This document shows, one piece after another, positions 1,618 to 40,560 of a stretch of 64,000 nt of DNA. Made by a program: the position numbers and the translations under genes. The notes beneath the pieces are model-generated. The model ran no database searches. It was not told the origin of the DNA and was given only the letters and a program-made list of their open reading frames with translations. Location of the stretch: IMG/VR virus record IMGVR_UViG_3300022866_000322, positions 124,001 to 188,000 of that record. The stretch is one strand, 5' to 3'. Positions within the stretch are counted from its first letter, which is position 1, and the number at the start of each line of letters is the position of its first letter.

Positions 1618-4056
1618 GTGATCATGAAGTACTTTTTTGTTTGTGCGTTGTCTTTATCTATTGTAGCCTGTGGTGGCGGAGGCGGGGGCGGAGGTCCAAA
1701 CGTTAGACCCACAATATCCAGCCCAACACTTTCGGCTTCTAGCAACACCAATTTTGTTGCACCAGTAAAAGCAGGCAGTTACAATCTATTTGTTAGTGGT
1801 AGCACAACTGCCCCTGTGCAGGACATATTTGTACAAGACCTAAACAATGACAACAAAGAAGAAATTGTCATTGCTGGACGTATGAGCCAGAGTGATACTA
1901 ACCTTGTAACTGCACCCGATCAAACAGCTAAAAATGCCGCCTGGCAGAACAGTCAAATTAGTGTATTTGGTTGGAACGGTAGCGACCAACTTGAAAACCA
2001 AACCAGCAGTTGGTTCACAGGAACAGAAAATCAAATAATAGGTGCCGAGCCAGGAATCGCATTTGGTGACTTCAACGGTGATAACAACACTGACATGGTT
2101 GTTGGGCATTCAACTGATATGGATTTCCTTGGAGATACTGTTGTGTTTACCAACAGTGGTACCAGTAGTTTTGGCAGAGATGATTATGCTACTAACCTTT
2201 GGACACATGATGTTGAGGTACACGATATAAATGGTGACGGATTAGATGATGTTATACTAGGAGGGTACGGTAATCCAGTTGTGATGTTAGGCGATGTATC
2301 TGGTACAATGACACAGATAACTACAGATCACTTTGGTATGAGCGGACTAGCCGCAGGAGATTTTCTAGGTGATGGTTCCACAACGTTTGTATTTGTAGAC
2401 AGTTCATTTAATACCACTTTGCCAGATAAAGCAACTAGGGAAATTGAAGATTCTAGACTGTTTAGTTTTACACAGACTGGTGCTAACACTGGAACATTCA
2501 CTGAACTAGCAAAACTGCCCAACCCCATATTTGAGTCCAGTGACTTTGATTCTTTGTTTGCTGTAGGTGTAGAACGTAGTCATGATATCAGAGCATTACC
2601 TTTCGACTTTAACAACGACGGTTCACTTGATGTTGTGGTTGTTAGCGTTAGCACAAATCCAAACGATGGTGTAAACAGAACTGAAGTACAATTTTTACAA
2701 AACAACGGTGGCGGTAACTTTGTTGACGTGACTGACGATGTGCGAGTAGGTTGGGATAATGTTACCAACGGAGATTATAATTCGCAGTTAAGAGATGTCA
2801 ATGATGATGGGTTGACTGACATATTATTAAGCGCACAGAACAGCACAGGTGACAGCACCAGAGTCTTACTGCAAACAGCCGAAGGCAAGTATGTGCAAAG
2901 TTTTGAAGAAATTTTTGATGATTTTGTGTCAGACGCTAGAGCAAATGAGTCTAATGCTACTGGCTTGTTCAACACTGTTAGATTCTTAACTGGACCTAAC
3001 GGAGATAAACTGTTGGTTACTGCTGTAACACTGAACGACGGAAGCAATGCAGTGTATACCAGTAGGCTAGGTGATGCAGGAGGTACCACAGCGGCAGCCA
3101 GCATAGCACTGATTCAGCAAGTATGGCCATATGTTACAGATGAAGTAGCCGCACAAATACTAGCAGGTACAGCATTCACAGACTTTGCAGGATTCGATCC
3201 TGATGTACACGGACTAGGTGTAATTGATATAGATCAGGCACTGTTGCCCGTGGGCGAACTGCGCATGCCACTAGACGGACGTGAAGGGACACGGGCCATT
3301 AACGGTGAGATCGCTGGTGTAAACTTTGGCAGTTTTGATAACGTTACAGCAGTAGACAGTACTGGCAGAGGATTTGACATCAACATCAACAGTATGCATA
3401 CTCCGGACATACAGAACAATTGGTATGATGTAGCTCTAATAGACAGCATAACCAGAATGGACTATAACTTCGAGCATGTGTACAGCGATGGTATGTTGAA
3501 CTACAGTCCAACTGATGAGTCTGGTAACTTCACCATGGGGCTGAGAGATATCAAACTTGCCAAAGGCTGGTACTTGCAAGGACAGTACACTACACTAGCA
3601 GATCGCAACCCTTGGTTCCACATGAGCGGTATGTGGGGTACAATAAACAGTTCCGAAACAATAGAAACTGTAGTGACCCACGTAAAAGACAAGTTTATGT
3701 TTAACATAGGCAACATGCACACAACTACCGACTTTGATGGTGGGTTAGTAACAAATGTAACCCCAATAGACAGTGTTTGGGGCGAAATCAGCTGGAGAAA
3801 TGACGGTTTACGACTAGCTGTGGGTAGTATGCCCTATGTTGTCAAAGGCGGTATAGATGTGCGTTTACCTAGCACAATTGATTCACAAGGCGTTGTACAC
3901 TACGATACATTCAACTTTGAAATTGAAAATCAGTTTGCCACATATTCGAGTGTAAGTTACGTTAACAGTTTCCGCAACATAAACTACACATTAGGTGCTT
4001 ACAACAACACATTAGGATTCTATCAAGCACAATTAAAACTAAATCTAGCTTTTTAA
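1618..4056 (+). CDS. Lipoprotein with FG-GAP/VCBS repeats and probable C-terminal outer-membrane beta-barrel (autotransporter-like)
   Basis: Lipobox SIVA-C then poly-Gly; repeated DxNxDGxxD motifs (DLNNDNKEE, DFNGDNNTD, DINGDGLDD, DFNNDGSLD, DVNDDGLTD); amphipathic beta-rich C-terminus ending LKLNLAF. Confidence 0.7.
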   Translation: MIMKYFFVCALSLSIVACGGGGGGGGPNVRPTISSPTLSASSNTNFVAPVKAGSYNLFVSGSTTAPVQDIFVQDLNNDNKEEIVIAGRMSQSDTNLVTAPDQTAKNAAWQNSQISVFGWNGSDQLENQTSSWFTGTENQIIGAEPGIAFGDFNGDNNTDMVVGHSTDMDFLGDTVVFTNSGTSSFGRDDYATNLWTHDVEVHDINGDGLDDVILGGYGNPVVMLGDVSGTMTQITTDHFGMSGLAAGDFLGDGSTTFVFVDSSFNTTLPDKATREIEDSRLFSFTQTGANTGTFTELAKLPNPIFESSDFDSLFAVGVERSHDIRALPFDFNNDGSLDVVVVSVSTNPNDGVNRTEVQFLQNNGGGNFVDVTDDVRVGWDNVTNGDYNSQLRDVNDDGLTDILLSAQNSTGDSTRVLLQTAEGKYVQSFEEIFDDFVSDARANESNATGLFNTVRFLTGPNGDKLLVTAVTLNDGSNAVYTSRLGDAGGTTAAASIALIQQVWPYVTDEVAAQILAGTAFTDFAGFDPDVHGLGVIDIDQALLPVGELRMPLDGREGTRAINGEIAGVNFGSFDNVTAVDSTGRGFDININSMHTPDIQNNWYDVALIDSITRMDYNFEHVYSDGMLNYSPTDESGNFTMGLRDIKLAKGWYLQGQYTTLADRNPWFHMSGMWGTINSSETIETVVTHVKDKFMFNIGNMHTTTDFDGGLVTNVTPIDSVWGEISWRNDGLRLAVGSMPYVVKGGIDVRLPSTIDSQGVVHYDTFNFEIENQFATYSSVSYVNSFRNINYTLGAYNNTLGFYQAQLKLNLAF

Positions 4057-4126
4057 ACGAGTAAATACAATAGCAATAAAGTTTCAAAGGAGGCACAGTA
4101 GCACAAATAACATTTAGGAGAACCAC

Positions 4127-4753
4127 ATGAAGTGGATATTAGCAATGTTGTTGGTATCAACAACATCAGTAGCACAAGCCCAAGAAAGCGATCCAGTTGG
4201 GTACTGTAAAGCAACAGCTTATTTGGCTTTGGATATTGGAAGACAACTTAGTCAAGGACTTGACCCAACCAGTATAAACTTTTCGTTTCCCAATGCACAA
4301 ACACCAGGAGACCAGCAAAAAGCGGAAGACTGGGGTCGATCGTTGGTCATAAGAGTAGTAAATGAATGGGCAAAGGATCCCAGCCCAGAGATAATTGCAG
4401 ATATTCTGCTTCAGGAATGCCTAACAGCATATGGTGTACTTAAACAATCACACTACCAAGATGGTAAGTTTATCAAGACACAGTCTGGCTACAATAAACA
4501 AAGTAGGAGAGCCGTCTGCTACGAGCAGATAACCAGATTTGATAAGTTACTTAAACTTTATCATAAAATTGGATACAATGGTGTGTTGAATACATTCCCG
4601 CCAGAACAGGAAGGTTTCCCTCGTGAGTACGCAATTGAAATACTAAATGAAATTGAAACCATTGATAACAAACAAAAACGAGATGCATGGATTGAAGAAA
4701 AGTGGTGGACCTGCATTGAGAAGTTTGGGGGAAGTCGTGAAACCGACGGTTGA
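4127..4753 (+). CDS. Secreted hypothetical protein
   Basis: AGGAG RBS; Sec signal peptide (MKWILAMLLVSTTSVAQA); 208 aa with paired Cys. Confidence 0.65.
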   Translation: MKWILAMLLVSTTSVAQAQESDPVGYCKATAYLALDIGRQLSQGLDPTSINFSFPNAQTPGDQQKAEDWGRSLVIRVVNEWAKDPSPEIIADILLQECLTAYGVLKQSHYQDGKFIKTQSGYNKQSRRAVCYEQITRFDKLLKLYHKIGYNGVLNTFPPEQEGFPREYAIEILNEIETIDNKQKRDAWIEEKWWTCIEKFGGSRETDG

Positions 4754-4856: not shown

Positions 4857-5393
4857 ATGATAAAGAAGAGACTTACCAATTCTACTGTGGAACAGCACGT
4901 ATATAATATGTGCCGGCAGATGGACCAATCCATGTGGCGTCCAGACATTGTAGTCGGATTAACACGTGGTGGTTTGGTTCCAGCAAACATGATCAGTCAA
5001 TACTTTGATGTACCATTAGAAACACTCAAAGTAAAACTACGTGACCTTCAGCCTGGCGAAGAAAATGAAAGCAAACATCATTTAGCGGGTTTAGCACATA
5101 CTGGCAAGCATGTACTAGTAGTAGACGATATAAACGATACTGGTGCAACACTGGACCATATATGTCGTGACTGGCAAACTAGTTTTTCCAACCCAAGGCA
5201 TTGGCGTTACTTGTTCAATAACAGTGTTAAATTTGCTATGTTGATTGATAACGAGTCAAGTAAATTTATGTACAACATTGACTACTATGGCGAACAAATA
5301 GATAAAAGTGTCGAGGATGTTTGGATTGAATTTCCTTGGGAAGTTTGGTGGGAACAGCACAGTAAATCAAGCTCATTTGTATTTGACAAATAG
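4857..5393 (+). CDS. Purine phosphoribosyltransferase (Gpt/Hpt-like type I PRTase)
   Basis: IVVGLTRGGLVPA, PRPP loop VLVVDDINDTGAT, WIEFPWE. Confidence 0.9.
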   Translation: MIKKRLTNSTVEQHVYNMCRQMDQSMWRPDIVVGLTRGGLVPANMISQYFDVPLETLKVKLRDLQPGEENESKHHLAGLAHTGKHVLVVDDINDTGATLDHICRDWQTSFSNPRHWRYLFNNSVKFAMLIDNESSKFMYNIDYYGEQIDKSVEDVWIEFPWEVWWEQHSKSSSFVFDK

Positions 5394-5924
5394 ATGGAAC
5401 TTAGCCCGTATGGTGGAGAAATAAAACAATTTTTTGATAACGAAACCTTGGGTTATTTTGCTCAAGTATTCAATTTGTTCACCCCTTCGAGAACAGAATA
5501 TCAAGCTATTTCGGATGCTCTGTGTGAAAAATTTAACACCAGTGGTGAAACCAGAAGAGAAGTACAAGAAGTCATCTTGCCGACAAATATTCTTAACCTA
5601 GTTACAGATAAACTGCGCACGTATTTTGGAAAAAACGCTTGTATTTCAGCCTGCTCATGTTGGCAAGATTATTCATATTATGAAAACAATCTGCACACAG
5701 ACGATGCTGACAGTGTTAACAATGTTCTTATTGTTGCAATAACAGCAGATCCATTTACAGGTACACAATTTTGGAGCGAAGATGAGCGGCAGTTTATATA
5801 CAGCATACTAGAGTACAACAAAGCATTTTATCTATTAGACAGCACAGAAATTATGCATGGTATGAAATTTTGGGTACCACTACATTTCCTAAGACAAAGT
5901 GTATATATTAACTTCAATAAATAG
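5394..5924 (+). CDS. Putative 2OG-Fe(II) oxygenase-like protein
   Basis: HxD (LHTDD), distal H (IMHGM), R (LRQSVY) spacing typical of DSBH dioxygenases. Confidence 0.55.
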   Translation: MELSPYGGEIKQFFDNETLGYFAQVFNLFTPSRTEYQAISDALCEKFNTSGETRREVQEVILPTNILNLVTDKLRTYFGKNACISACSCWQDYSYYENNLHTDDADSVNNVLIVAITADPFTGTQFWSEDERQFIYSILEYNKAFYLLDSTEIMHGMKFWVPLHFLRQSVYINFNK

Positions 5925-6010: not shown

Positions 6011-6511
6011 ATGAACAACCCAAGACAATACAAGTACGTGAGTACAAAAGAATATGTAGATCAGTTTCCTTGTGCATACAGGCAATGGAGAGCTGACAGT
6101 CACTGTAATCTGATACACGGCTATGCGTTTACAATGCGTTTCTTTTTCGGAACGGATGACTTAGACGTTAGAAACTGGGTAGCAGACTACGGTGGATTAA
6201 AAGAACTAAAAGGTGTACTACAAGATCAGTTTGATCATACGCTACTGGTTGCTGAAGATGATCCAGAACTAGAAATGTACAAGCAACTGCAAGCAAAGAA
6301 GATGGCTAAAATAACCATACTACCAAGACTTGGTTGTGAAGGACTAGCAGACCAACTGTACAAATATGTTAATGGTGTGTATATCCCAGACATGTGGGGT
6401 CAAGCAGAAGCAGACAGACTTTGGTGTTACCGAGTCGAGATACGTGAGACACAAAGCAACATGGCTTGGCGTGAAGGACACAGAGAATGGAACGAGGACC
6501 TGTTTGAATGA
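6011..6511 (+). CDS. queD: 6-carboxy-5,6,7,8-tetrahydropterin synthase (QueD/PTPS)
   Basis: SHCNLIHGY, DYGGLK, FDHTLLV, C-terminal ET motif. Confidence 0.9.
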   Translation: MNNPRQYKYVSTKEYVDQFPCAYRQWRADSHCNLIHGYAFTMRFFFGTDDLDVRNWVADYGGLKELKGVLQDQFDHTLLVAEDDPELEMYKQLQAKKMAKITILPRLGCEGLADQLYKYVNGVYIPDMWGQAEADRLWCYRVEIRETQSNMAWREGHREWNEDLFE

Positions 6512-6852
6512 GCTTGAAATATAGTTGGCATGACATTGGCGGTGACGTGGTTAAGGATACTGATGTTTATTTGCTTAAAGATAATAAAACTCTAAATAAT
6601 CTTGTATTAAGTTCTACAAAGTTATACAGAGGACAACGCACTAACGGACACAGGCACCCCGGTCAAGAAGAAGTATATGTATTTGTACAAGGCTGGGGAG
6701 AGATGATTGTTGGGGACGAAGACAGTGAACCATTTACTGTTGGCCAAGGTGATTACGTATTGATTCCAGACGGTGCATTCCACAGAGTCACAAACACTGG
6801 TGACATGAACTTGATATTCAATTGTATATTTGACGGAAAGAGAAATCATTAA
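6508..6852 (+). CDS. Cupin-domain protein
   Basis: GHRHPGQEEVY ... IPDGAFHRV cupin motifs. Confidence 0.85.
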   Translation: MSLKYSWHDIGGDVVKDTDVYLLKDNKTLNNLVLSSTKLYRGQRTNGHRHPGQEEVYVFVQGWGEMIVGDEDSEPFTVGQGDYVLIPDGAFHRVTNTGDMNLIFNCIFDGKRNH

Positions 6853-7703
6853 TGAAACTTAAAATAAGCGAACTGTTTTACTCAGTGCAGGGAGAAGGCC
6901 GTTACATGGGTGTGCCCAGTGTATTCCTGCGTACATTTGGTTGCAACTTCCAATGTGCTGGTTTTGGTATGCCTAGAGGCGAAAAGACAACAGAAGTGGA
7001 CGCTATTATTGAGCTGAACGATAAATTCAAATACAAAACCTATGGTGACTTACCACTGGTAAAAACAGGATGTGACAGTTATGCTAGTTGGCATCCCAAG
7101 TTTAGGCACTTGAGTCCTACATACGAAAACGACGAGCTGGCAGACATGATCGTGGATACACTGCCTTTTAAAGAGTGGCGTGAAGAACACTTGGTTATTA
7201 CAGGTGGCGAACCATTACTGGGTTGGCAACGTGAGTATCCTGACTTGTTGAATCAACCCAGGATGCAGAAACTAAAGGAAATAACAATAGAAACAAATGG
7301 CACGCAACCATTGCATGAGGACTTTAGGTATTTCCTAAGTGATTGGACCAGTCGCAGAAGTTCTAGTGCATTAACGTTTAGCGTAAGTGCTAAACTAAGT
7401 TGTTCGGGTGAAAAGAAGGAAGATGCTATTTGCCCTGATGTTGTAGCAGAGTATAGTCACTTTGGTTACACCTACTTGAAGTTTGTTATTGCGAACGAGC
7501 AGGATGCAGAAGAAGCATTAGAAGCAGTAAAAGAATACAGATTAGCAGGCTTTGACGGTCATGTATACTTGATGCCAGTTGGTGGCGACGAACATACGTA
7601 CAGGTTAAATAATAAAGCAGTAGCCAACCTGGCTATGCGAAATGGTTTACGTTATTCAGATCGACTCCAAGTTCCGTTGTTCAAGAATGAGTGGGGGACA
7701 TAG
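6852..7703 (+). CDS. queE: 7-carboxy-7-deazaguanine synthase (radical SAM)
   Basis: ISELFYSVQGEG, VFLRTFGCNFQC...GCDS, ITGGEP, IETNGT, RLQV; next to queD. Confidence 0.9.
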   Translation: MKLKISELFYSVQGEGRYMGVPSVFLRTFGCNFQCAGFGMPRGEKTTEVDAIIELNDKFKYKTYGDLPLVKTGCDSYASWHPKFRHLSPTYENDELADMIVDTLPFKEWREEHLVITGGEPLLGWQREYPDLLNQPRMQKLKEITIETNGTQPLHEDFRYFLSDWTSRRSSSALTFSVSAKLSCSGEKKEDAICPDVVAEYSHFGYTYLKFVIANEQDAEEALEAVKEYRLAGFDGHVYLMPVGGDEHTYRLNNKAVANLAMRNGLRYSDRLQVPLFKNEWGT

Positions 7704-25851: not shown

Positions 25852-26508
25852 CTAATTTAGTTGAAAATGATCCAAGTTGAATTCGTGGTCGCCTGGAGAA
25901 TAATCTGTAATTAGCTTGCATAATTGGGTCGCAATGACAGAATTATTCTCTTTACTAAAATGATTTAGTCTGGTGTCTTGATGCAATGTGTTAGGATGTG
26001 CTGTGTCCTTGTATATTTCTGCAATACTAATCGATGTTAAGTCTGGAAGTACTTGTACACCACCTAGTAGGTTTCGAAATGGCAACGAACTAGGAAAACC
26101 ATGTAAATGGACAGTTTTGATGTTAGAATATTCTTTATTGATTTCTTCAAACCATTTCTGCTGTGCCCATTCTGCAAAAGGTGCATTTTCTAAATACTTG
26201 TAATACAGTTTCACTGCTAGTCCTACTTCTGTTTTAGGAGTAGGATCAAATTTATTGATGTTTGCTATTTCATAGTTAGGGCAATCGAACGGGATTCTTT
26301 CTGCGAAACTGTGAACAAAAACAAGGGCATCGGTTTCTGTTGCCAACATATCTTTAATATATTTTTGATTCAAGAAATGTCGATAAGCCCACCATGGGTG
26401 TCCGCTATACCCTGCAACAACTAAATTTAAATTTAGTAATTGTGCTAGTTCCTGGGGCCAACCTTTACTAGCACAGAAACTGTCACCGACTACAACTAAA
26501 TTTTTCAT
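25852..26508 (-). CDS. SGNH-like protein
   Basis: VVVGDSF...W, C-terminal LNHFSKENN; AT-rich. Confidence 0.55.
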   Translation of the reverse strand: MKNLVVVGDSFCASKGWPQELAQLLNLNLVVAGYSGHPWWAYRHFLNQKYIKDMLATETDALVFVHSFAERIPFDCPNYEIANINKFDPTPKTEVGLAVKLYYKYLENAPFAEWAQQKWFEEINKEYSNIKTVHLHGFPSSLPFRNLLGGVQVLPDLTSISIAEIYKDTAHPNTLHQDTRLNHFSKENNSVIATQLCKLITDYSPGDHEFNLDHFQLN

Positions 26509-27998
26509 GATAGTACTCGAACTCCATATTCAGTTTCGAAACGATCAGCATCTGCACGATCGTTTACCATCGGTTCGCCCCTGATGTTTAAACTTGTATT
26601 AAGCAACATCGGGCAACCTGTTTTCTTATACCATGCTTCTAACAGTTTTCTAAATCCACTGCCGCTATCTGCAGGTACTGTTTGTACTCTACTTGTTCCG
26701 TCAGCATGTAGTATAGCAGGAAACTTGTCACTTGTACACCGTGCTACCACTTGCATGTAATCACTACGTTGCCAACCTTTGGGCATTTCAAAATAGTCAT
26801 GCACATGCTCTGCCAGTATAGCAGGAGCAAATGGCCTAAAGTGTTGTCTACGTTTAATTTCATTTACACGATCCTTTATTTCTTTGCCACGTGGGTCCGC
26901 TAGTAAACTTCTGTTACCCAATGCTCTAGGACCAAACTCTGCTCTGCCACTTGCTACACCTGCTATTTTATTCTTGGCTAATTCTTTTACCAGTGCCTTT
27001 ACAGGATACTCACCAGGTATGTTGTGACCAAGATAAGGATGTTGCCAATTTAGTCTGCCACCATGCACTAGTGCCGCGGCTCCTAAACTACTACCAGCAT
27101 CACCTGGGTTTGGCATAATCCAAAAATTGTCAAAGCAACTACCTAAAAGTCTATTGGCTAAACAGTTAAGTGCAACACCTCCCATGAATACTAAATTTTT
27201 ACTCCAATGAAAGTTTGCCGCATTCCACATAACACTGTTAAGCAATGTTTCTGTAACTGCTTGTATACTACCAGCCATGTCTGCATCGCTAATAACCGAC
27301 AGTTCGTTGCTCAACACACCGTCAAAGCCTGTGTGTAAATTATGTTTTAATTTTATATTAGTAAAGTCTGCTACAAGTTTGTGAGACAACTGATTAGAAT
27401 AATGTCGTACTTTTTCTTTGTCGGCATAAGCGGCCATTCCCATTAGAATATACTCTTCGTCCATTGGGCGTAGTCCTATGTGTGCAGTTGCGGCCGAGTA
27501 CATCAACCCGATACTGTGTGGGTAACGTCTGGTCCAAAGTTTCTTGTACACTGCACGACCATTCTTGTATTCAGCGCCCCATATGGTAATACAATCCAAC
27601 TCACCTATAGCGTCTACTACAACAACTGTTGCACGTTCAAACGGAGATGTTTGAAATCCAGCGGCAGCATGGCTTAAATGATGATTATGTGTGCTAACAG
27701 GAACATCAACAGGACGTCCGATTTGATCGAATATCAATTTATCAACACTGGTTTGCGTCCAGTTGAATCCTTCACCTGATATGAGTCTGCGTATTTGTTT
27801 CAACCAAGGACGCTCATAGTATGCAATATGATCAATACCGTGGCTCATTGCTTCTTGCACAATCCCCTCGCATAGATTGGGATCGTGTTTTTGTTTGCTG
27901 TAGCGTTCGCTATGACTAGCAAACAGTATGTCGCCTGCTGTGTTTATTACACTAGCACCAGCGTCATGAAAACCACTGCTTATTCCTAATATGTTCAT
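26505..27998 (-). CDS. Carbamoyltransferase (NodU/CmcH/TobZ family)
   Basis: GFHDA, SERYS..KHD, HHLSHAA, MGMAAY, GGVALNC, PGDAG, EFGPRALGNRS, RPFAP, HADGTSRVQT, LLNTSLN. Confidence 0.95.
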   Translation of the reverse strand: MNILGISSGFHDAGASVINTAGDILFASHSERYSKQKHDPNLCEGIVQEAMSHGIDHIAYYERPWLKQIRRLISGEGFNWTQTSVDKLIFDQIGRPVDVPVSTHNHHLSHAAAGFQTSPFERATVVVVDAIGELDCITIWGAEYKNGRAVYKKLWTRRYPHSIGLMYSAATAHIGLRPMDEEYILMGMAAYADKEKVRHYSNQLSHKLVADFTNIKLKHNLHTGFDGVLSNELSVISDADMAGSIQAVTETLLNSVMWNAANFHWSKNLVFMGGVALNCLANRLLGSCFDNFWIMPNPGDAGSSLGAAALVHGGRLNWQHPYLGHNIPGEYPVKALVKELAKNKIAGVASGRAEFGPRALGNRSLLADPRGKEIKDRVNEIKRRQHFRPFAPAILAEHVHDYFEMPKGWQRSDYMQVVARCTSDKFPAILHADGTSRVQTVPADSGSGFRKLLEAWYKKTGCPMLLNTSLNIRGEPMVNDRADADRFETEYGVRVLS

Positions 27999-28599: not shown

Positions 28600-28697
28600 T
28601 TGTAAATAAAAGGATCTCGTTTTTTAAGTTCTTTGAGCTTTTTACGATAGCGTATTTCTAGGATGATTCTATTCCAAAGGTTCTTTAACCAGTTCAT
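28596..28697 (-). CDS. 33-aa basic micropeptide MNWLKNLWNRIILEIRYRKKLKELKKRDPFIYK (not in ORF track)
   Basis: Read manually. Fills the gap between two SGNH genes; its TGA overlaps the next ATG (ATGA). Confidence 0.65.
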   Translation of the reverse strand: MNWLKNLWNRIILEIRYRKKLKELKKRDPFIYK

Positions 28698-29481
28698 TGA
28701 ACTTGTCCTTCATAAGTTGATAAGCGGCATCGTGCGCTTCTTCTAGTGGATGTGTTTCTCCACTAGGGTATTTATTTTCCATTGCCCACTGGTAAAAACC
28801 TCTTGGGCCTGTTTCACCATCCGGAAACCAAAACCAGTTTTGTTGTCGATCTTTGATCTCCTTGACTAGCATGTTGATGTTATCATCACACATCTTCATT
28901 GATCTGTTACTAGCGTCATGTATCAATTTATTGCACAAGATACTGTTATCTGCACATGTGAACATGTACTTTATTCCGTTTGCAATTAAGTAGTTTTGCA
29001 GATACACTATTTCTTTTAACGATTGGTATGTGTCCCAGTAATCCCCACCTACATGTTTGTAGAAAGTTTCAGCAAAACCTGCCATACCTTTTTGCGTAGC
29101 TCTAGCAATGTGCTCGCTTTGCATTCTTGCTATAGGATTTTCTAATTTGATATCTGCGGTGTGCGGAGTAATAGCGTACCAATTACCTGTGCGTTGCCCT
29201 GTGTCGTAGTTGAATCTAAATTCATACCTGCCAGGGAATGTCCAGTTTACAATAACAAATAAATCACGGACCTGAGTGCCGTGCATGCGGTATACATAAA
29301 CTTCATCAATCACTCTACGTGCAATAGCATCGTTGCCTATACCGGGCCAGGCTGTGCATCTATATGTTTGTTTAATATCATGTGCCAACAATGCAGGAAA
29401 TGTGCTGTGACTATGCGCACGTATGCAGTCTTTTAATTCACTACCGTATACGAAACTATCACCCCCTGCTACTATGTTCAT
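28669..29481 (-). CDS. SGNH/GDSL hydrolase-like protein
   Basis: AGGDSFVYG, GIGNDAIAR, VNWT, THPLEEAH. Confidence 0.7.
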   Translation of the reverse strand: MNIVAGGDSFVYGSELKDCIRAHSHSTFPALLAHDIKQTYRCTAWPGIGNDAIARRVIDEVYVYRMHGTQVRDLFVIVNWTFPGRYEFRFNYDTGQRTGNWYAITPHTADIKLENPIARMQSEHIARATQKGMAGFAETFYKHVGGDYWDTYQSLKEIVYLQNYLIANGIKYMFTCADNSILCNKLIHDASNRSMKMCDDNINMLVKEIKDRQQNWFWFPDGETGPRGFYQWAMENKYPSGETHPLEEAHDAAYQLMKDKFNELVKEPLE

Positions 29482-30607
29482 ACCCTGGCCTCATCATGTC
29501 TATTTGCGTTTGTTTGTAGTTATGGTCACCCCAACAATAATCAAACGTATTACTCACGTCTCCAACTTCTATACGGTAAATGTCTAAGTGATTGCTAAGA
29601 TGTTGTAGTATTGCTTGGGGATGACATTGTCCAAAACTTTCTGTCAGCAATACTTGTCCAATTTTTGCATGCCCTAAACTTAACTGTGGATCAGTTGGGT
29701 CCATGCCGTTAAGTTCTAACCAATTAGTAAAGTCATCAATTTCTTTATTGTGCCACTCGTAACCATCAACATAGCGTATTGTTTTACCCCACTCTACATC
29801 AAACTCTCCCGAGTAGTATTGTAAATGAGTAATTGCTTCACATACCGTGTCAGTTAATTCTGGTGCATGCTCATCCCTAAACACTTCCATCAGTGTTTTG
29901 CCAATTTGTGTCCAGTGCATGTATACTCCACCAAACTCTCTGTCGTATCCGTTTGCAATAAAATCTTTCCTATGCTCGTCCGTTAGCTCAAAACGTAATG
30001 CTTGCAAGAATGTTGTAATCTGACTAGGACGTACCCAGTCTGGCACTGTTGCTTGTTTACGTTGACTTAGAATAAGCGTTTCTGATTCGTGACATAAGTT
30101 GTTTAGTTGCCTAATAGCGTATTTGGTTTCAAAATCTGCATGTTTGTAATAAGGACTTAGATTTTCTACAGTGCCTTGCAGTACTTCGAAGTAGTTATGT
30201 AGTCTATTCATTGCACCATGCTTGACCCCAAGGCCCAAGTTGTCACTATCATAGCCAACAGGATATTCATCACCGAATCGGACAGTGTCTGGCGTAAAGT
30301 AATCTTCTATTATGTAAGGTTTAAGTCCCGCTTGCTGCCAAATACCTGTGCGATTAAAAATATTAATACGGTATATCGAATCATTTATTTCGCGACACAG
30401 ATAGGGCAAGTTGCGCGGCGAATGGGGGAAGCCCATAAAGCAATAATTTTTTTCTAATAGTCTGTTGCTTCGTAATTCTACCTGCAATGCACTCGCCCAG
30501 TCCTGCGCCAATTGGGTATCTGTTAATTCTATTGTGTAGTCTAACTGATCTTTTTTGTCTAAAGGATTACGTAGTACTACCTTAACTGATTTGATTCCAC
30601 CACTCAT
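29459..30607 (-). CDS. Hypothetical protein within the radical SAM cluster
   Basis: ~380-aa ORF; NRLHNYFE, LNNLCHE, HWTQIGKT. Start uncertain (30607 or 30637). Confidence 0.7.
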   Translation of the reverse strand: MSGGIKSVKVVLRNPLDKKDQLDYTIELTDTQLAQDWASALQVELRSNRLLEKNYCFMGFPHSPRNLPYLCREINDSIYRINIFNRTGIWQQAGLKPYIIEDYFTPDTVRFGDEYPVGYDSDNLGLGVKHGAMNRLHNYFEVLQGTVENLSPYYKHADFETKYAIRQLNNLCHESETLILSQRKQATVPDWVRPSQITTFLQALRFELTDEHRKDFIANGYDREFGGVYMHWTQIGKTLMEVFRDEHAPELTDTVCEAITHLQYYSGEFDVEWGKTIRYVDGYEWHNKEIDDFTNWLELNGMDPTDPQLSLGHAKIGQVLLTESFGQCHPQAILQHLSNHLDIYRIEVGDVSNTFDYCWGDHNYKQTQIDMMRPGYEHSSRG

Positions 30608-31868
30608 ATACGTCTGGTCTCTTGGACAATATTTCATCCATTGTAGTTGATTGCGTTCTAATACTTTCTAATTGTAACACACGAGCCTTGCCTTTTGCAA
30701 GTCCTTGTTTGTATTCATTTGGCCATTGTTCGTCAAACGTAGGACGTGATTTAAGTTGCTGTAGTACATCATGCATTGCACCATGTGTGTCCGGCAACAG
30801 TTCGTCCACCCATTTATGTAAAATAGATTTTGGTAGTGCTAGTGGACTCAACGCAATATCCGGGCTAAAGCTGAAAACAACTTTAGCCAAGATATCTACA
30901 TTAAGCTCACGTGCTAGTTTGATTATTGGAACGACTTCAAACATACCCGGTAAGGTAAGCGTGAAGTCTATTCTCATTTGTCTTCTATGAGTAGCTGTAC
31001 TAACTCCTCGTTTAAAATTTTCAAGCCACTCCGGATAGTCAAGACCTGTTCTGACATACTCTCCAATTGTGCCTGTACCGTCAATGCTTGCGCATATTTG
31101 CCAGTCGCGAAGCCCAGGTAAAATATCACTGTAAAGATCGCAACCGCGATAAGTGATCCTACTAAGATTAGTGTTGTACCTTGCATAAACATTTTTTCCA
31201 TCTCCCAGTTCAATTATTCTCTGCATGTACTTCCAGTGTTGCTCGTACATGAGAGGTTCACCGCCTACCCAATAGACTTCCTCGACACGGTGGTCCTCTA
31301 CCGCTTGTGCAAACTCTTGTTCAACTTGAGTACTTTGGAAATGTTCAATCTGATTCTTGACCTCGGGGCGCATCCAACTGTTTTTTGGATCGTGCCAATT
31401 GACCATGTCATGCTGTTTTTGCTCAGTTTCCCATGCACTGGACAGCATGTCGCCGCACATACGGCATTTGAAGTTACATAGGTTACTGAATCGATAATCC
31501 CAGGAGATTGGCTCCATGGAGGTGTAACCTGTTTCGTCAGTTGTTTCTACTGCGTGTAAGTACTTATGCCCAAATAAACTGTTAAAATATGAGCGGTAAA
31601 CGTCAGTGTTTAATAACTTGTCATTGCACACTTCACACTCTGGTAACGTTTCTCCTGCCATCATGCGCTTGCGCACACTACGCATGTGTTCACTATTCCA
31701 ATGCTGTTCTAATGTAATAGGTATATAAGTACCAGTACCTGCTTTTGTATCTATGTACTGTTCAAAGTTTTGTGCTGGTTCACGTGATGCACAACATAAA
31801 CGTCTTTCTGTCTGTGGACTCAGATACGTGTGTGTCCACGGTGCCATGCATAATGTTTTTGATTTCAA
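30582..31868 (-). CDS. Radical SAM enzyme with N-terminal SPASM/Twitch-like domain (7 of 7)
   Basis: CMAPW..LCC..CEVC; CNFKCRMC; GGEP; YNTN. Confidence 0.9.
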   Translation of the reverse strand: MKSKTLCMAPWTHTYLSPQTERRLCCASREPAQNFEQYIDTKAGTGTYIPITLEQHWNSEHMRSVRKRMMAGETLPECEVCNDKLLNTDVYRSYFNSLFGHKYLHAVETTDETGYTSMEPISWDYRFSNLCNFKCRMCGDMLSSAWETEQKQHDMVNWHDPKNSWMRPEVKNQIEHFQSTQVEQEFAQAVEDHRVEEVYWVGGEPLMYEQHWKYMQRIIELGDGKNVYARYNTNLSRITYRGCDLYSDILPGLRDWQICASIDGTGTIGEYVRTGLDYPEWLENFKRGVSTATHRRQMRIDFTLTLPGMFEVVPIIKLARELNVDILAKVVFSFSPDIALSPLALPKSILHKWVDELLPDTHGAMHDVLQQLKSRPTFDEQWPNEYKQGLAKGKARVLQLESIRTQSTTMDEILSKRPDVYEWWNQIS

Positions 31869-33133
31869 TTTTCGGCCATTGGTAAATTAGCTAACTTAAA
31901 ATATTCTTTTAAATCGTCGTACAAATAATGTTTGCTATCATATACATTCATGTCATAAAAAACTTCTTTGTCCCAGGTATCCCAATTCCACATTTTTTGT
32001 ATATTCATCGACAATCCAAACTCTCTACACAGGTTAGCAAATAGAGGTAGATCTTTATAATTACTCTTTTGTACTACAAAGTCAGCAGATAACTTTGTTT
32101 TAAAATTATTTTCTTCTATTAGATCTTTAACAAATTTTACATTTTTTAATAGGTTGTCCCACTGTCCGCCAACTCGTGTTAGTTTATAGGTTTGCTCACA
32201 GCCTGCATCAAAACTTATACGTAACTCTGAGATATAAGGAAGTAACTTCAACACTAAGTCTTTCTTTGCAATAAGGACACTGCCATTTGTGTGTATAATA
32301 TTCTGTATGTTTGTTTTACCACTATCTATTATGTAGTCAAGCAGTTCTAAATAAACGTCACTTATAAATGGCTCGCCGCCAGCCCATCTGATAATTATAG
32401 GTTGGTCCTTGATTTCGTCAATTATCAATTTTTTAATCTTTTCAGATATCGTATCATTAATTGGTCTTATAATGAGATCATTGTTGTAATTTTGATATTC
32501 TACTCTACAACTCGGACACTTAAAATTACAGCTAATATCAAAATCAAAAACTAAATTTTTTGGTATTTGTGTAACACAAAGATTTGAATCATCTTGATCG
32601 TCTAACTCTAAAGGTATTTGATCTTTATCAGTGTACGTTTTTTTGTGCGATGCTGGGTTAGCAGACTGGAAAAACGTACATATACTAGAATTGCAGTAGT
32701 AATATCTATCTTTAAGAATCTCGAATCTAATTTTCTTTGCTTGGTTGCAATTTAATATTTCGTAAATGTTTTTTGAATCCAATACTGTGCCTAAGAAAAT
32801 AGGAATCCAACTTGAGCAAGCACATAAAAAAACATTCCCGTTTTCATTGACTCCCATTGTTTCCCATGGTTCCCTGCACCTGTTTGTTCCAGTATATGAT
32901 TTGTTATAAAAAACTTGATCCTGGCGTGTTTGAATTGATGTTGACAACTCTTCGGTTGACTTAGATGCTATATCTTTATAATGTTCCTCCATTACGCCAA
33001 CAAAATTACTTAATTCATTGTCAATGGTAGGAGAAACACTATAGTTGTCATTAATAAAATCGTCATACTGAGGCCAATCCGCCCCTTTAAATTTTCTGTA
33101 TGATTTACTATCTATTATTTTCTTTAATTCCAT
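31865..33133 (-). CDS. Radical SAM enzyme (6 of 7), divergent, with an extra N-terminal module
   Basis: CREPW..LCAC..C...C; CNFKCPSC; AGGEP; HTNG; SFDA. Confidence 0.88.
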   Translation of the reverse strand: MELKKIIDSKSYRKFKGADWPQYDDFINDNYSVSPTIDNELSNFVGVMEEHYKDIASKSTEELSTSIQTRQDQVFYNKSYTGTNRCREPWETMGVNENGNVFLCACSSWIPIFLGTVLDSKNIYEILNCNQAKKIRFEILKDRYYYCNSSICTFFQSANPASHKKTYTDKDQIPLELDDQDDSNLCVTQIPKNLVFDFDISCNFKCPSCRVEYQNYNNDLIIRPINDTISEKIKKLIIDEIKDQPIIIRWAGGEPFISDVYLELLDYIIDSGKTNIQNIIHTNGSVLIAKKDLVLKLLPYISELRISFDAGCEQTYKLTRVGGQWDNLLKNVKFVKDLIEENNFKTKLSADFVVQKSNYKDLPLFANLCREFGLSMNIQKMWNWDTWDKEVFYDMNVYDSKHYLYDDLKEYFKLANLPMAEN

Positions 33134-33140
33134 AGTCTTG

Positions 33141-34346
33141 TTAGTACCCCATTGCCTTTGCTATTTCCGGGTGTGTGTCTGAAAAACTTTCTTTACGATA
33201 TCTATCAGTTTGTTGCATCTTAAACACAAACTCTTCGCCGTCAGTTCCTGCACCATTTTCGATAAATTTTACAATGCGCATGATTTCTGCTTTATGTTTG
33301 GGCATGAATTTACCGTTAAGTAACTTCTCCACCACAATACGTTTTGCTACTGGTGTCAATCCATCAATACACATGTGCTTAGGATCGTGTAACATGTTAA
33401 AGTAATGATCATTGAACGTTTGTGTGTTTACCCACTCGCATAGTTCTTCTAAGTAATAAACATTTTGTGCGTTAATGGTCATGCACACTTGTGTGGTAAT
33501 TTTTCTTATGTTGCGATCACGCAGTTTATGAAAACGTCTTATGTTGTCTTCTACTTCGTTCCACTTAGCACCGTAGCGTTCGTATTCAAAACGCTTGCCT
33601 ACGTTGTCGATACTGAATGCAATATCCACACGTTTAAAGTGACTCCATAACTCATACGCATCTGGCCATTGTGTACCGTTTGTGTTGTAGTGTATGTCAA
33701 TGTCTTTGGCGTAGCCTTGATCTACTGCATACTGTAGCAATTCAAAGTGTTCTTTGATCATAAATGGCTCACCGCCAGTGAATTCTAGATACTTGATGTT
33801 GGGTAGTAGTTCACGTAGGTTGTCCCAGAAGGCTTGTGTCTTTCTTGGCCATTGTCCTTGTTGCAAGAACTTGTATGCCAAGTGGCTCTTTTTGTTCTTC
33901 AATTCGGGTATATAATCTATTTCTTCTTGTGCCCATTTACTACTGCTCCAACTTCCGCATATACGACACTTTAGGTTACAAATGTTCCCCAGCTTTAAAT
34001 CCACAAACCATAATTGGTCTGGTTTGTCGTTAGCATAGTCTACTTTGTCAACAAACTCTTTTAGTCGGATCCTACTGTGTATGCGTTTGCTTGCACGGCC
34101 TGCGGCTTCTTCTTGCCAACAGCGTGTGCAGGTCTCTGGTTTCTCACCATTTCTAAATTGTTGCCGTAAGTCTTGCATGTACTTGCTGTTGTATATTGTC
34201 TGCAAATTGTCTTTGTTTAAGTCATACTTTTCGCCTGACTCATCTGTTATTTCGTCTATTGCCAAACAGCAAGGTCTTGCGGATCCAATTGGACTAGCTT
34301 CTATGCTAATCCAAGGTAGCATGCATATTGTTTTAGGAAGTTCCAT
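33141..34346 (-). CDS. Radical SAM enzyme with N-terminal SPASM/Twitch-like domain (5 of 7)
   Basis: CMLPW..PCC..CTRCW; CNLKCRIC; TGGEP; YNTNG; FSID. Confidence 0.92.
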   Translation of the reverse strand: MELPKTICMLPWISIEASPIGSARPCCLAIDEITDESGEKYDLNKDNLQTIYNSKYMQDLRQQFRNGEKPETCTRCWQEEAAGRASKRIHSRIRLKEFVDKVDYANDKPDQLWFVDLKLGNICNLKCRICGSWSSSKWAQEEIDYIPELKNKKSHLAYKFLQQGQWPRKTQAFWDNLRELLPNIKYLEFTGGEPFMIKEHFELLQYAVDQGYAKDIDIHYNTNGTQWPDAYELWSHFKRVDIAFSIDNVGKRFEYERYGAKWNEVEDNIRRFHKLRDRNIRKITTQVCMTINAQNVYYLEELCEWVNTQTFNDHYFNMLHDPKHMCIDGLTPVAKRIVVEKLLNGKFMPKHKAEIMRIVKFIENGAGTDGEEFVFKMQQTDRYRKESFSDTHPEIAKAMGY

Positions 34347-35661
34347 TTAGTTCCTTGTACTCAGGGAATGTGTCCCAGAAGTTTTCGTTTCTTATAACAT
34401 CTAATTTTGCAATTTGTTGCTCAAACTCAGGCCACTGCTTGTTGTTATCTTGTCCTTGTAATAAACTCAACACACTCTCATAGCCATTAATGGCACGACG
34501 TAAACTGTCCTGCGGGTCTAACCATGCAATATGTTCTTTGTACTTGGGCGTTATAACATTCTTTTTAAATTCCGTTGTAAATATATCTGGTCTGTACCAG
34601 TCTGGTGACTGACATATATTAATATTCCAGTCTTTTGCTTCAATTAGCCCTAACTCTACCCACTCTTTGTGAAAGTCTGGCACGTGTAGCACGTTCATTG
34701 CACTCACGGTTGCGCTTACATAAAAGTCCACATGCGGTACTTCTTTTAACATGCGTTGTCTGTTCTCAACTGTTTGTTTCCAATCTGTGCCTTTGCGCAT
34801 AAGCTCTGCTCTAGCACCACTAGCATCTAAACTGGCGCCAACACTAACATTCGTAAAATGTTGCCAGTAATCGAATACATGTTTGTTTTTATAACGCATT
34901 TCGCTAAAGTTTGTATTGTACTGTATTCGCACATCTGTCTTACCGTACTCTATTAGTTTGTCTAATAGATAATAATGTTCTTTCATTATAAGTGGTTCGC
35001 CACCTGCAAAATACACCTGCTCTAAATGTGGAATATGCTGTTCCATTTGTTCCAACATACTGTCTTCGTTGCCCGCAGTATACTCTACTCGTGCCATGTC
35101 CCTACCCAGTACATCTGGCTTACGATTATACAGTTTTACATGGTCATTATACCAATTACTGCTAAAGATAGGACCACAACTTCTACAGCTAAAGTTACAC
35201 AGGTTACTGAACCTAACGTCCCAGTAGCGTATTTTAAAATCATCTACAGAACCATCTGCATTAGTCTGCTCTGCTTCTGCTATGTGATGACCGTAGTTTC
35301 TGTTTGAATCGTTGCGCATACTAAATGCACCGTGTTGTTCTTGCTCGTAACACTTGGTACATTCTTTACACTCTTTACCTGCAAGCATATTTGTACGCAT
35401 TGTTTTGTAATCGTCTTGATTCCATACCTCTTCCATAGTATGCTTGCGTAAGTCACCTACAGGATGCCAATAATCACTTAGACAACAAGGATATGCTCTG
35501 CCATCTGGAAATGCATGCATGTGCATCCAGGGCAACATGCAAAACGTTTTGCTGTCCATTAACAAGTCTGTTTGTTTCTCAGTCAAGTCTTCTAGTTCTG
35601 CAAAGTACGGCTTGCGACTCATGTAGTCGTAGCCTTTGTTGTAAAATTTTTTAGAGTCCAT
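34333..35661 (-). CDS. Radical SAM enzyme with N-terminal SPASM/Twitch-like domain (4 of 7)
   Basis: CMLPW..PCC..CTKCY; CNFSCRSC; AGGEP; YNTN; ASLD. Confidence 0.92.
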   Translation of the reverse strand: MDSKKFYNKGYDYMSRKPYFAELEDLTEKQTDLLMDSKTFCMLPWMHMHAFPDGRAYPCCLSDYWHPVGDLRKHTMEEVWNQDDYKTMRTNMLAGKECKECTKCYEQEQHGAFSMRNDSNRNYGHHIAEAEQTNADGSVDDFKIRYWDVRFSNLCNFSCRSCGPIFSSNWYNDHVKLYNRKPDVLGRDMARVEYTAGNEDSMLEQMEQHIPHLEQVYFAGGEPLIMKEHYYLLDKLIEYGKTDVRIQYNTNFSEMRYKNKHVFDYWQHFTNVSVGASLDASGARAELMRKGTDWKQTVENRQRMLKEVPHVDFYVSATVSAMNVLHVPDFHKEWVELGLIEAKDWNINICQSPDWYRPDIFTTEFKKNVITPKYKEHIAWLDPQDSLRRAINGYESVLSLLQGQDNNKQWPEFEQQIAKLDVIRNENFWDTFPEYKELNGTS

Positions 35662-36994
35662 TGTACCAATCTGCTAGTTCTGGAAAAGTCTCTGTCAAGT
35701 TCTTTCCTCTGCGTTTGTCATACTGTTCGTGAAACTGTTTAAAGTCGTTGTGTAGTTTGGGCATGTCGAATGTGTCTGAATGTGGTGTTTCTACTACATC
35801 CAAGTAATCAATTAATCGTATGATGTGGTTAATCTCATGTTCATGCAACAACTGCCCAATTGGTCGTGCCGTTTGATAATCCAACCATGTGCGTAAACGT
35901 TCTTTGTGTTTAATTCTAATTTCTTCAGGGAACACCAACGGACTTTGGAAACTAGGGAAGCGTAAGATATTAAGTGTAAAACTTACAGCATGTTTACCGT
36001 GTTTTGATTTCCATCCAACTAATAAATCTAAAAAGGCAGTCAGACTTTCCAAACACAATGCATTAATTGTACACATTACATGTAACCCACGCAATTTATT
36101 TCTATGTACTTTTAGTACTTTGTTTATGTTATCACACCACAGTTCCCATTCCAGGCCGTCACGTATATACTCTGCTTGTTTATCCCAACTTTCGTTGCTA
36201 GTATATAGGTCTATAGGTTGGTCTACACTGTCGAACAATCTATCTACATCTATATCCTTACCTAAGTTACTGTTAATCGCCAAGCGTGTTTTACTCTTGC
36301 CTTTGTTTTGTTTAAACCAGTCTATAAGTTTCCAGGTGTAGCCACTCATTAGTGGTTCGCCACCTGTAATGCGTAGTTCGTCTAGCGTTCGGTGTAGGTC
36401 TGATTCCCACCACTTGAAGAACGCCTCAACATAAGGATTTTCCTCGCCGAATTTGTACAACTGCGCACTGTCATGAGCATGGGTAAAATGATTACGCCCG
36501 TCAGAAACAAGCCCAGTATAACTTCCGTTTGATTTGATATCCTTAACCCATGTACTACTAAAAGCAGGGTTGCAATAACTGCAAGCAAATTGACAAGTCC
36601 TATCGAAACTGATTTCCAAAGTTCGTAAGTCCACGTCTCCTGTTGCATCTGATTGATATGCATCGTCTAATTCCTTTATAGTATATATTTTACTTTTATA
36701 CACACGGTCAGAAATGTTATCACGTTTGATATCTTCAATCTTCCAGCAGTACTCACAACCTGGCGGACGTTCTCCTGCCTGCATCTGCGCCCTGTCTTGC
36801 TTCTTTTCGGGCGTGTTGTGTATTGCTTTGGGATTACGCTTAACTTCTTCAATATCAACTTTGTGTGCTGGTGGATGATGACAACTGGTACTCATGCCAC
36901 TACCAAGCCATATAGTAGCGTTATACCATTTTGCTCCACAAAAGCTCGCTGACTTTGTGTCTAATATTTGTTGTTTAAATTCTAAATCATTCAT
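35651..36994 (-). CDS. Radical SAM enzyme with N-terminal SPASM/Twitch-like domain (3 of 7)
   Basis: CGAKW..SCHH..CEYCW; CQFACSYC; TGGEP. Confidence 0.92.
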   Translation of the reverse strand: MNDLEFKQQILDTKSASFCGAKWYNATIWLGSGMSTSCHHPPAHKVDIEEVKRNPKAIHNTPEKKQDRAQMQAGERPPGCEYCWKIEDIKRDNISDRVYKSKIYTIKELDDAYQSDATGDVDLRTLEISFDRTCQFACSYCNPAFSSTWVKDIKSNGSYTGLVSDGRNHFTHAHDSAQLYKFGEENPYVEAFFKWWESDLHRTLDELRITGGEPLMSGYTWKLIDWFKQNKGKSKTRLAINSNLGKDIDVDRLFDSVDQPIDLYTSNESWDKQAEYIRDGLEWELWCDNINKVLKVHRNKLRGLHVMCTINALCLESLTAFLDLLVGWKSKHGKHAVSFTLNILRFPSFQSPLVFPEEIRIKHKERLRTWLDYQTARPIGQLLHEHEINHIIRLIDYLDVVETPHSDTFDMPKLHNDFKQFHEQYDKRRGKNLTETFPELADWYNGL

Positions 36995-39631: not shown

Positions 39632-40560
39632 TACCAGCCTTCCTGTTTCCTAATAACACTTATCTCTGTGGTCATTACCTCAGCATTGCGTAGTGTAGCA
39701 CCATAATGATGTTTGAAAAACTTGCTCTGTTGTGCATCTAGTGTAACAATAGGTAAACCTAGCCGTTTTGTGAGTGCTGTTTCTAAATTTGCGTTATGCT
39801 CCATTGGGTCGTTGTCTTTAACTGACTCCCATAACTTTTCTAATTCAGCAAAGTCTTGTACACGCTTGTAAGGCCAGTCTTCTAACATGGTCATGTAAGT
39901 ACCAAGTCGTGCGCCATACATTGCCCACACACCATTCTCAACATCCATGCCTACACTTTGCCAAATACACAAATGATCATAGTTGCGATTGTTTACTTTC
40001 TTTTCAAACTCTACCAGTGTTGGCTTTGCACCACGATCCAAACACATCTTTACACCTTCTCTAAATCCTGCTCGCCATGCTTGCTTGGGTGTGCCGTTTG
40101 GGTATGTTGTACTGTAGCAGTTGTGCATTGCTATGTACTTGGGATCAAAACAAAACTCCACTGCTGTGTCGTCACTGCCATCACTGGCTTCGTGTGTTTG
40201 CATGTTGTTAACAAATGTACGTGACCAAACACTTAGTCCGCCGTTGCCGTAACGTAGTCCATTGATCGTGTTCTTAGCTTTCCAACGGAATGCGCCACCT
40301 TCGAACGCAGGTTCTATTTCCAACTGTAGGTTAAAGAAGTCAGGATCAGGTAAGTTATCACCATCGATCAGCACAAACCATTCTGTGTTGCTCAGAGCGG
40401 CTGCGGCTTTGTGTGCGGCATCTGACCCTTCTACTCCGTCAACACGATCCGCCCAAGGTACCATGTTCTGTATTTGTATCCAGAACTCTTCCTTCTTTGG
40501 TTCGTCATAACTTAGATAGATGCAATCCAAGTCTGCTATGTCAATAATCTGTGTATCCAT
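39631..40560 (-). CDS. GT-A fold glycosyltransferase-like protein
   Basis: CIYLSYDEP, SDAAHKAAA, FVLIDGDN (DxD), NGLRYGNGG, WRAGFREG. Confidence 0.6.
   Translation of the reverse strand: MDTQIIDIADLDCIYLSYDEPKKEEFWIQIQNMVPWADRVDGVEGSDAAHKAAAALSNTEWFVLIDGDNLPDPDFFNLQLEIEPAFEGGAFRWKAKNTINGLRYGNGGLSVWSRTFVNNMQTHEASDGSDDTAVEFCFDPKYIAMHNCYSTTYPNGTPKQAWRAGFREGVKMCLDRGAKPTLVEFEKKVNNRNYDHLCIWQSVGMDVENGVWAMYGARLGTYMTMLEDWPYKRVQDFAELEKLWESVKDNDPMEHNANLETALTKRLGLPIVTLDAQQSKFFKHHYGATLRNAEVMTTEISVIRKQEGW

Follow-up and report, generated by a model that had tools for sequence, protein, structure and literature searches.

The window analyzed here, i.e., 64,000 nucleotides (nt) corresponding to bases 124001–188000 of the 221-kb IMG/VR virus record IMGVR_UViG_3300022866_000322 (estimated to be 63% complete), carries on its forward strand a gene for a large predicted outer membrane lipoprotein (1624–4056), in which an FG-GAP beta-propeller is followed by a short remnant of an S8 subtilase and by a C-terminal beta-barrel. 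Virion structural genes, a radical-SAM cluster and a 7-deazaguanine gene set are also present in the window, and salt-lake metagenome runs contain the same DNA. GenBank phages yielded no match, either to the window DNA (megablast) or to the protein encoded at 1624–4056 (tblastn).

The Lipoprotein Gene and Its Product

Counted from a GTG codon at 1618, the open reading frame (ORF) 1618–4056 (+) has 812 codons and ends with a stop codon at 4054–4056; the ATG at 1624 is the likelier start codon, and the ESM Atlas record begins there (residue 3). The product of 1618–4056 is hereafter called P0001, and its residues are numbered from position 1618. Upstream of the gene lies the perfect sigma70-type promoter that had been pointed out in an earlier annotation of this DNA, made by a model from the letters alone (the sequence-only reading): TTGACA (1562–1567), a 17-nt spacer and TATAAT (1585–1590), on the + strand, with 12 of 12 consensus positions matched. 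The whole window holds only five perfect sites of this kind, the one at 1562–1590 included. Moreover, 33 of the 39 related loci that could be scored have a match of at least 10/12 ending 27–33 nt before the start codon, a score reached by about 5% of random 150-nt windows, which indicates a conservation of the promoter beyond chance. A second perfect match, TTGACA-16-TATAAT, is found in antisense within the lipoprotein gene (2774–2801, –); since it is absent from a 94%-identical relative, we rejected it as a functional promoter and consider it a product of chance, most probably arising incidentally from the coding sequence.

The protein begins with MKYFF...SIVAC followed by eight glycines, and its N-terminus reads as a lipoprotein signal peptide (1624–1671, +) with the lipobox IVAC, in which the codon of Cys18 occupies 1669–1671. 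The pattern used was [LVI][ASTVI][GAS]C after a hydrophobic signal, along with a residue other than Asp at position +2 for outer membrane sorting; P0001 has both, with a Gly at +2, and thus shows the sequence pattern of a bacterial lipoprotein. An alignment of 53 family sequences (A1) shows no variation at Cys18 and Gly19, and the lipobox and the poly-Gly run are found again in nearly all related loci. The Gly8 run opens a Pro/Ser-rich segment (residues 19–45; 1672–1752, +), which family conservation and prediction confidence both suggest to be a flexible tether: in the AlphaFold2 model of the whole protein, computed from the 53 sequences (mean predicted local distance difference test, pLDDT, 84.5), residues 1–43 are disordered (pLDDT below 50).

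The propeller follows at residues 46–479 (1753–3054, +). Its assignment is based on Pfam, where FG-GAP_3 matches over five stretches (2.4e-16; 60.5 bits for a cut-off of 26.9) and so does FG-GAP (1.3e-6; 28.6 bits for a cut-off of 22.1), on six loops of the DxNxDGxxD type, i.e., the kind that binds calcium in integrin alpha, and on the AlphaFold2 model, where a propeller is predicted at residues ~46–485 with a pLDDT mostly above 85. A Foldseek search with the whole model gave no hits other than propellers of the FG-GAP type (CRTAC1, ITFG2, LGI1-EPTP, integrin alpha and PVL lectin). P0001 thus has the repeats and the calcium-loop motifs of FG-GAP/VCBS propellers, and its predicted fold resembles their seven-bladed members. 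With CRTAC1, ITFG2, PVL lectin and integrin alpha (Foldseek 1e-8 to 1e-6), it has these repeats and motifs in common, but the identity is only 9–15%, and the propeller of P0001 is fused to a lipid anchor and a membrane barrel. The last propeller hairpin (about residues 450–479) is of ambiguous origin according to a hidden Markov model (HMM) test of the junction.

A Remnant of an S8 Subtilase

The sequence-only reading had claimed that the segment behind the propeller matches the C-terminal end of S8 subtilases, in a form devoid of the catalytic serine of the GTS motif and of the D and H motifs. The corresponding text is indeed there, at residues 485–548 (nt 3070–3261), as are the lipobox, the Gly8 run, the FG-GAP repeats and the C-terminal Phe listed in the same reading. 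Yet the similarity to S8 does not emerge from direct profile searches: no Peptidase_S8 domain was detected in P0001 by Pfam (no PF00082 at E ≤ 1) or NCBIfam scans, a profile of the full-length family found no subtilase in the PDB, and a tail profile built only from proteins lacking S8 found nothing in either the PDB or Pfam.

It does emerge through relatives that have kept the protease. A phmmer search with residues 470–812 against 1.84 billion representatives returned 206 proteins, which include, beside the family of about 800 amino acids (aa) to which P0001 belongs, longer proteins in which Pfam recognises a complete Peptidase_S8 domain. These are the S8-containing homologues sharing the C-terminal part that the sequence-only reading had suggested looking for. 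The protein P0129, for instance, has its S8 domain at 517–817 and is aligned with the query at 761–1067 (E 3e-39), while BLASTP gives 32% identity between P0001 and P0129 across residues 500–799; in P0243, only the tail is matched (3.8e-7), over a stretch that overlaps with the end of the S8 domain. In a local census, the tail match came immediately after the S8 core in all 49 S8-bearing proteins. At the level of residues, the segment of P0001 running from Y480 to HGLG pairs with the segment of these relatives running from just before GTSMAAP to HGQG. Because the last ~60 S8 residues of the S8-bearing relatives align with P0001 together with the barrel, residues ~480–545 (3055–3252, +) are a genuine C-terminal remnant of Peptidase_S8, demonstrable only via S8-bearing intermediates.

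The homologous segment (~65–85 aa) comprises the strand before the position of the catalytic Ser, the two following helices (predicted by AlphaFold2 at 492–502 and 508–517, then short strands) and the closing HGxG. P0001 lacks all three catalytic residues (Asp, His, Ser), as well as the entire S8 core present in P0129 and in another relative, P0235; its catalytic-Ser column contains D486 or a gap. The content of this column differs among family members, and a subfamily has retained G-T-A there. The remnant is continued by a conserved beta-rich junction (residues 546–600; 3253–3417, +), with columns invariant in A1 and in a 57-sequence alignment (A2), common to the S8-bearing relatives and modelled with a pLDDT of about 89–96.

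The disappearance of the three catalytic residues could be taken to mean that P0001 is a defunct protease autotransporter in the course of being lost, with the S8 tail as junk. However, intact full-length members of the family, each about 800 aa long and mainly from marine/saline jumbo-phage contigs, number more than 170 and form a single clade, and several residues of the remnant and the junction are invariant (W503, P544, G546, G563, D580 and R584). Furthermore, the ratio of nonsynonymous to synonymous substitution rates (dN/dS), computed against a 94%-identical relative, is 0.08 for the whole gene, 0.065 for the S8 remnant and 0.024 for the junction. Against a 61%-identical relative, dN is 0.10 in the remnant vs. 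0.31 in the propeller, and no part of the protein is better conserved than the remnant, whose columns average 48% identity (alignment A3) vs. 39% overall. The selection data lead us to reject this decay scenario, which we consider extremely improbable. Given its low dN/dS and its being the most conserved segment, the remnant has been retained in a structural role rather than left to decay. P0001, which the sequence-only reading had called chimeric, is not the one-off chimera of a single phage but a member of an old conserved phage family under purifying selection.

S8-Bearing Relatives and the Probable Loss of the Protease Core

P0129 and P0235 show the layout of P0001 with a protease inside: from their sequences, both have a lipobox and a poly-Gly run, a passenger with an intact D/H/S protease and a barrel. 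In P0235 (1174 aa), the lipobox is followed by nine glycines, the same propeller as in P0001 (8e-118 with the propeller HMM of the family), an intact S8 domain and the barrel, and the catalytic motifs can be read directly (ADSGID, HGTHVAG and GTSMAAP). Residues 67–442 of P0001 align with 87–457 of P0235 (36% identity) and residues 493–771 with 822–1124 (23% identity). The two blocks are colinear, and the S8 core of ~360 residues that they flank in P0235 has no counterpart in P0001. The P0235 locus is also syntenic with the window (epimerase, FolE, the gene itself, phosphoribosyltransferase, 2-oxoglutarate (2OG)-Fe oxygenase, PTPS), and P0129 is found in a similar phage-like context.

In a tree of the tail and barrel (98 rows), the 82 proteins lacking S8 are grouped on one side of a branch with maximal support (100 in the Shimodaira–Hasegawa-like approximate likelihood ratio test), which requires one change of state between S8-bearing and S8-less proteins. 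This single clade with its single change fits one loss of the catalytic core. We examined P0235 as a direct, ancestor-like intermediate and rejected it, owing to the grouping of its tail and barrel with the lineage of another S8-bearing protein (P0218) and to the disagreement between the propeller and barrel trees. The combination of propeller and S8 is itself found only in P0235 among the best 120 of the 561 relatives of its S8 core. Modules have also been exchanged: the propeller of P0018 is 81% identical to that of P0001 and 67% to that of P0022, whereas its tail and barrel are 63% identical to P0001 and 77% to P0022, a pattern which indicates recombination at the junction between propeller and tail. 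For this part of the story, the sequence-only reading had favored a swap, in which the protease passenger would have been replaced by the propeller. As the same propeller coexists with an intact S8 domain in P0235, an internal deletion and the grafting of a propeller onto the remnant by recombination are equally possible. On the whole, this reading had nevertheless identified the parts of the protein correctly and was right in its guess at their origins.

The C-Terminal Barrel

Between the junction and the barrel lies a variable linker of low confidence (residues 601–619; 3418–3474, +; pLDDT 59–72), for which A2 yields no consensus. The remainder of the protein (residues 620–812; 3475–4053, +) is predicted to be an outer membrane beta-barrel, in line with what the sequence-only reading expected of the C-terminus: about twelve long antiparallel strands run to the terminal Phe in the AlphaFold2 model, and a separate fold of the C-terminal 343 residues, computed from the 57 sequences, reaches a pLDDT of 90.7 and a predicted template modelling score of 0.83. 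The last residue is F, W or Y in 46 of 53 family members.

A structural search against representatives places residues 597–812 among outer membrane barrels, the best matches being KdgM (12.9), CymA (12.6) and the translocator of NalP (12.0, over 178 residues with a root-mean-square deviation of 3.7 Å), ahead of the translocators EstA, EspP, AIDA-I, Hbp and BrkA (9–10). The autotransporter matches begin 30–55 residues upstream of the barrel, ahead of the linker or inside it (model residue 92 for NalP and 96–117 for EspP), whereas most porin matches begin at the barrel itself (model residue ~148–150). This upstream start hints, within the limits of a predicted model, at a linker occupying the barrel pore.

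Distribution of the Family and Bacterial Copies

More than 130 full-length homologues, from 93% down to 28% identity, were found in marine and saline metagenomes, and the family is carried by about 50 IMG/VR contigs of up to 344 kb, while in the ESM Atlas its clusters carry the label “Viruses 100%, Uroviricota”. About 40 viral loci share the order DegT–FolE–gene–...–QueD/phosphoribosyltransferase/QueE. Across these syntenic loci, FolE is 70–87% identical vs. about 31% for the lipoprotein gene, which therefore evolves much faster than its neighbors. A second lineage of large-phage-like contigs (loci L004 and L141; proteins P0074 and P0088) has the family gene between ClpX and HSP20-ClpS; there, a Porin_4 porin gene lies ~2.5 kb downstream of the family gene, so that these contigs encode at least two outer membrane barrel proteins.

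Bacterial copies were found as well. One of them (locus L002; 72% identity to P0001) belongs to a bacterial chromosome of 1.8 Mb, where it is flanked by ychF on one side and yebC-ruvCAB-tolQRAB-pal on the other and has lolB upstream. A second homologue (P0121) belongs to a contig of an alphaproteobacterial metagenome-assembled genome (L143), where it stands beside a 1203-aa NACHT-TPR protein, MORN, DUF2779/Cas4-like and further TPR proteins, a context that resembles a defence island. In addition, Ca. Puniceispirillum marinum has a chromosomal subtilase that falls within the wider S8-barrel family. Together, these three cases would be expected if the gene were host-derived cargo, i.e., a recent bacterial surface protein, or if the record were a misbinned bacterial contig, in both cases with no phage-specific role. 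Against this, the L002 copy is nested within the phage clade, has neither the conserved promoter nor the short start, and has no equivalent in any of the 60 relatives of its bacterium that were searched; the family recurs in about 50 IMG/VR contigs at a conserved phage locus; and the window itself includes virion structural genes. We thus deem a bacterial origin improbable. The L002 copy is best read as a transfer from phage to bacterium, which makes it a host lead for this phage lineage. At L002 9990–10130, ATA replaces the ATG start of the phage genes, and a far-upstream ATG would give a presequence of 43 residues; no consensus promoter was found either, and this chromosomal copy may be poorly expressed or inactive. 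A pattern scan of species genomes listed mostly generic FG-GAP proteins and is uninformative on full-length bacterial homologues.

A Surface-Displayed Propeller?

We propose that P0001 presents its propeller at the surface of the infected cell, on an autotransporter-like barrel with the S8 remnant as a base, and thereby remodels that surface, a proposition in which our confidence is evenly balanced. The gene would be transcribed early after infection by the host sigma70 RNA polymerase, and the product would then be exported, lipidated and inserted into the outer membrane by the host machineries (Sec; Lgt/LspA/Lnt; Lol; BAM). The junction and the linker would be threaded through the barrel in the manner of an autotransporter, presenting the propeller outside, where the N-terminal lipid and the Gly tether would keep it, as in NalP and SphB1. 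The remnant and the junction would serve as the folding and attachment base that formerly carried the protease. The propeller would bind, rather than cleave, a surface protein or glycan, and so alter the surface of the infected cell, the most likely purpose being to block the adsorption of further phages or to prevent the loss of progeny on cell debris.

The closest known parallel is with NalP of Neisseria and SphB1 of Bordetella (type Va; MEROPS S8), two enzymes that process proteins of the cell surface, where their lipid keeps them (PMC9977779, PMC9289746), and whose outward layout is shared by the S8-bearing relatives of P0001. P0001 itself differs from them in having neither protease core nor catalytic residues, nor the beta-helix stalk of ~200 aa that subtilase autotransporters have (PMC9289746); its barrel has no PF03797 match and no long pore helix is predicted, its passenger is an FG-GAP propeller, and its gene is carried by phages.

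Several results weigh against a surface-displayed propeller. The fold of the barrel resembles porins (KdgM, CymA, OmpG) as well as translocators. Neither hmmscan nor a profile search detected the Pfam Autotransporter family (PF03797) in P0001, in the 57 members of A2 or in the phage record. A comparison by hhalign with 22 genuine beta-domains from relatives of the candidate host gave a probability of 3% (E 0.015). Ahead of the barrel, DSSP assigns only a 5-residue helix (613–617), with no long helix predicted. Since the P0235 barrel belongs with another S8 lineage (P0218) and the propeller and barrel trees disagree, the order of events may have involved either a deletion or a swap. As regards known exclusion or defence families, PHROGs returned only a signal-peptide-level match to an unknown family and PADLOC none. 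Finally, metatranscriptome contigs from four runs (three studies, marine and salt marsh), 90–95% identical to the gene, tile nt 2025–4069, which fits the transcription of close relatives, but these RNA contigs come without start or strand information and may stem from DNA carry-over, hence they are no proof of transcription. By its sequence, then, the barrel does not belong to the Autotransporter family, and the protease autotransporter that the sequence-only reading had put forward is a possible rather than an established origin. With no PF03797 signal, an hhalign probability of 3% and no ~200-aa beta-helix stalk, we do not class P0001 as an autotransporter, though we hold with moderate confidence that it works like a lipidated one.

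According to the main rival explanation, the lipid would sit in the inner leaflet and the propeller would remain in the periplasm, on a KdgM-type, 12-stranded, porin-like barrel, either binding peptidoglycan, Tol-Pal or a substrate, or gating uptake. KdgM/NanC-type porins are only 8% identical to P0001, and they have no N-terminal passenger, lipobox or S8-derived junction. Besides, the relatives combining S8, lipobox and poly-Gly share the layout of the surface-acting NalP and SphB1, the structural matches to autotransporters extend upstream into the linker, the neighboring genes are for DNA modification and not for transport, and a double anchor including a barrel would be of no obvious use to a periplasmic binder. 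A periplasmic propeller hence appears rather unlikely to us, albeit less so than a bacterial origin of the gene.

As for the purpose of a propeller displayed at the surface, the sequence-only reading had suggested that an early remodelling of the host surface could serve superinfection exclusion, adhesion or grazing defence. The fast divergence of the gene, the swapping of its modules, the alleles with an active protease in sister phages and the occasional capture by bacteria fit an interface of conflict, such as exclusion or the protection of progeny. T5 Llp and Cor carry a lipoprotein signal. Like them, and like Lom and Bor of lambda, P0001 is a phage-encoded protein predicted to reside in the host envelope, but it is far larger, has several domains and shows no sequence similarity to PHROGs or PADLOC models. 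In being a barrel protein of a large phage, it also resembles the outer membrane repertoire of huge phages, for which 1,603 barrel proteins have been reported (preprint 10.64898/2026.10.24.761521). The main text of that preprint mentions neither autotransporters nor FG-GAP. Phage-encoded outer membrane proteins of large phages are only now being catalogued, and the present family is not named in that work.

A broader and more tentative reading, which we regard as possible rather than probable, is that a lineage of marine and saline jumbo phages has, at a fixed locus with an early promoter, its own outer membrane display cassette, fast-evolving, descended from lipidated subtilase transporters and with recombining propeller and barrel modules, of which some versions would have an active protease and most a propeller on the S8 remnant, and which would rewrite the cell surface by masking or cleaving receptors and occasionally be donated to the host as a possible exclusion factor. 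Whatever its function, the family offers a natural series in one genomic slot (an active S8 transporter, a propeller with S8, a propeller on an S8 remnant), which allows asking how a protease transporter becomes a device for displaying a binding protein, and what the remnant contributes to folding and export. If adsorption were altered, this would amount to a widespread and previously unrecognised mechanism of exclusion, or of protection against debris, in abundant uncultured marine phages.

Other Genes of the Window

Around the lipoprotein gene, a gene set of the 7-deazaguanine type was observed, the order of which is kept across about 40 related phage loci. All on the + strand, it consists of ORFs for GTP cyclohydrolase I (864–1556), a phosphoribosyltransferase (4857–5393), a 176-aa product (5394–5924), PTPS/QueD (6011–6511), a cupin (6508–6852) and a radical-SAM QueE-like protein (6852–7703). 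The 176-aa ORF holds the position of the 2OG-Fe oxygenase of related loci. Directly downstream of the lipoprotein gene, with no intervening terminator, comes an ORF of 208 aa with a cleavable-looking signal peptide (4127–4753, +), for which Pfam, PHROGs and PADLOC gave no match; we considered it as a partner of the lipoprotein and rejected it, since it is kept only in the closest relative (L050, 84%).

Farther away, a single ORF of 4719 aa (48830–62989, –) adjoins the virion structural genes and has a Pfam FG-GAP_2 repeat (3005–3050) and a seven-bladed lactonase-type propeller (3969–4095). The idea that the propeller of the lipoprotein is a paralogue of a virion receptor-binding protein was rejected, as this 4719-aa neighbor shows no specific similarity to it. 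The window also contains, at 28669–40587 (–), a dozen ORFs of ~270–460 aa, of which the three that were scanned all match radical-SAM families (PHROGs), and, at 26505–27998, a Nol-like carbamoyltransferase, which together form an unusually large modification/biosynthesis block for a phage.

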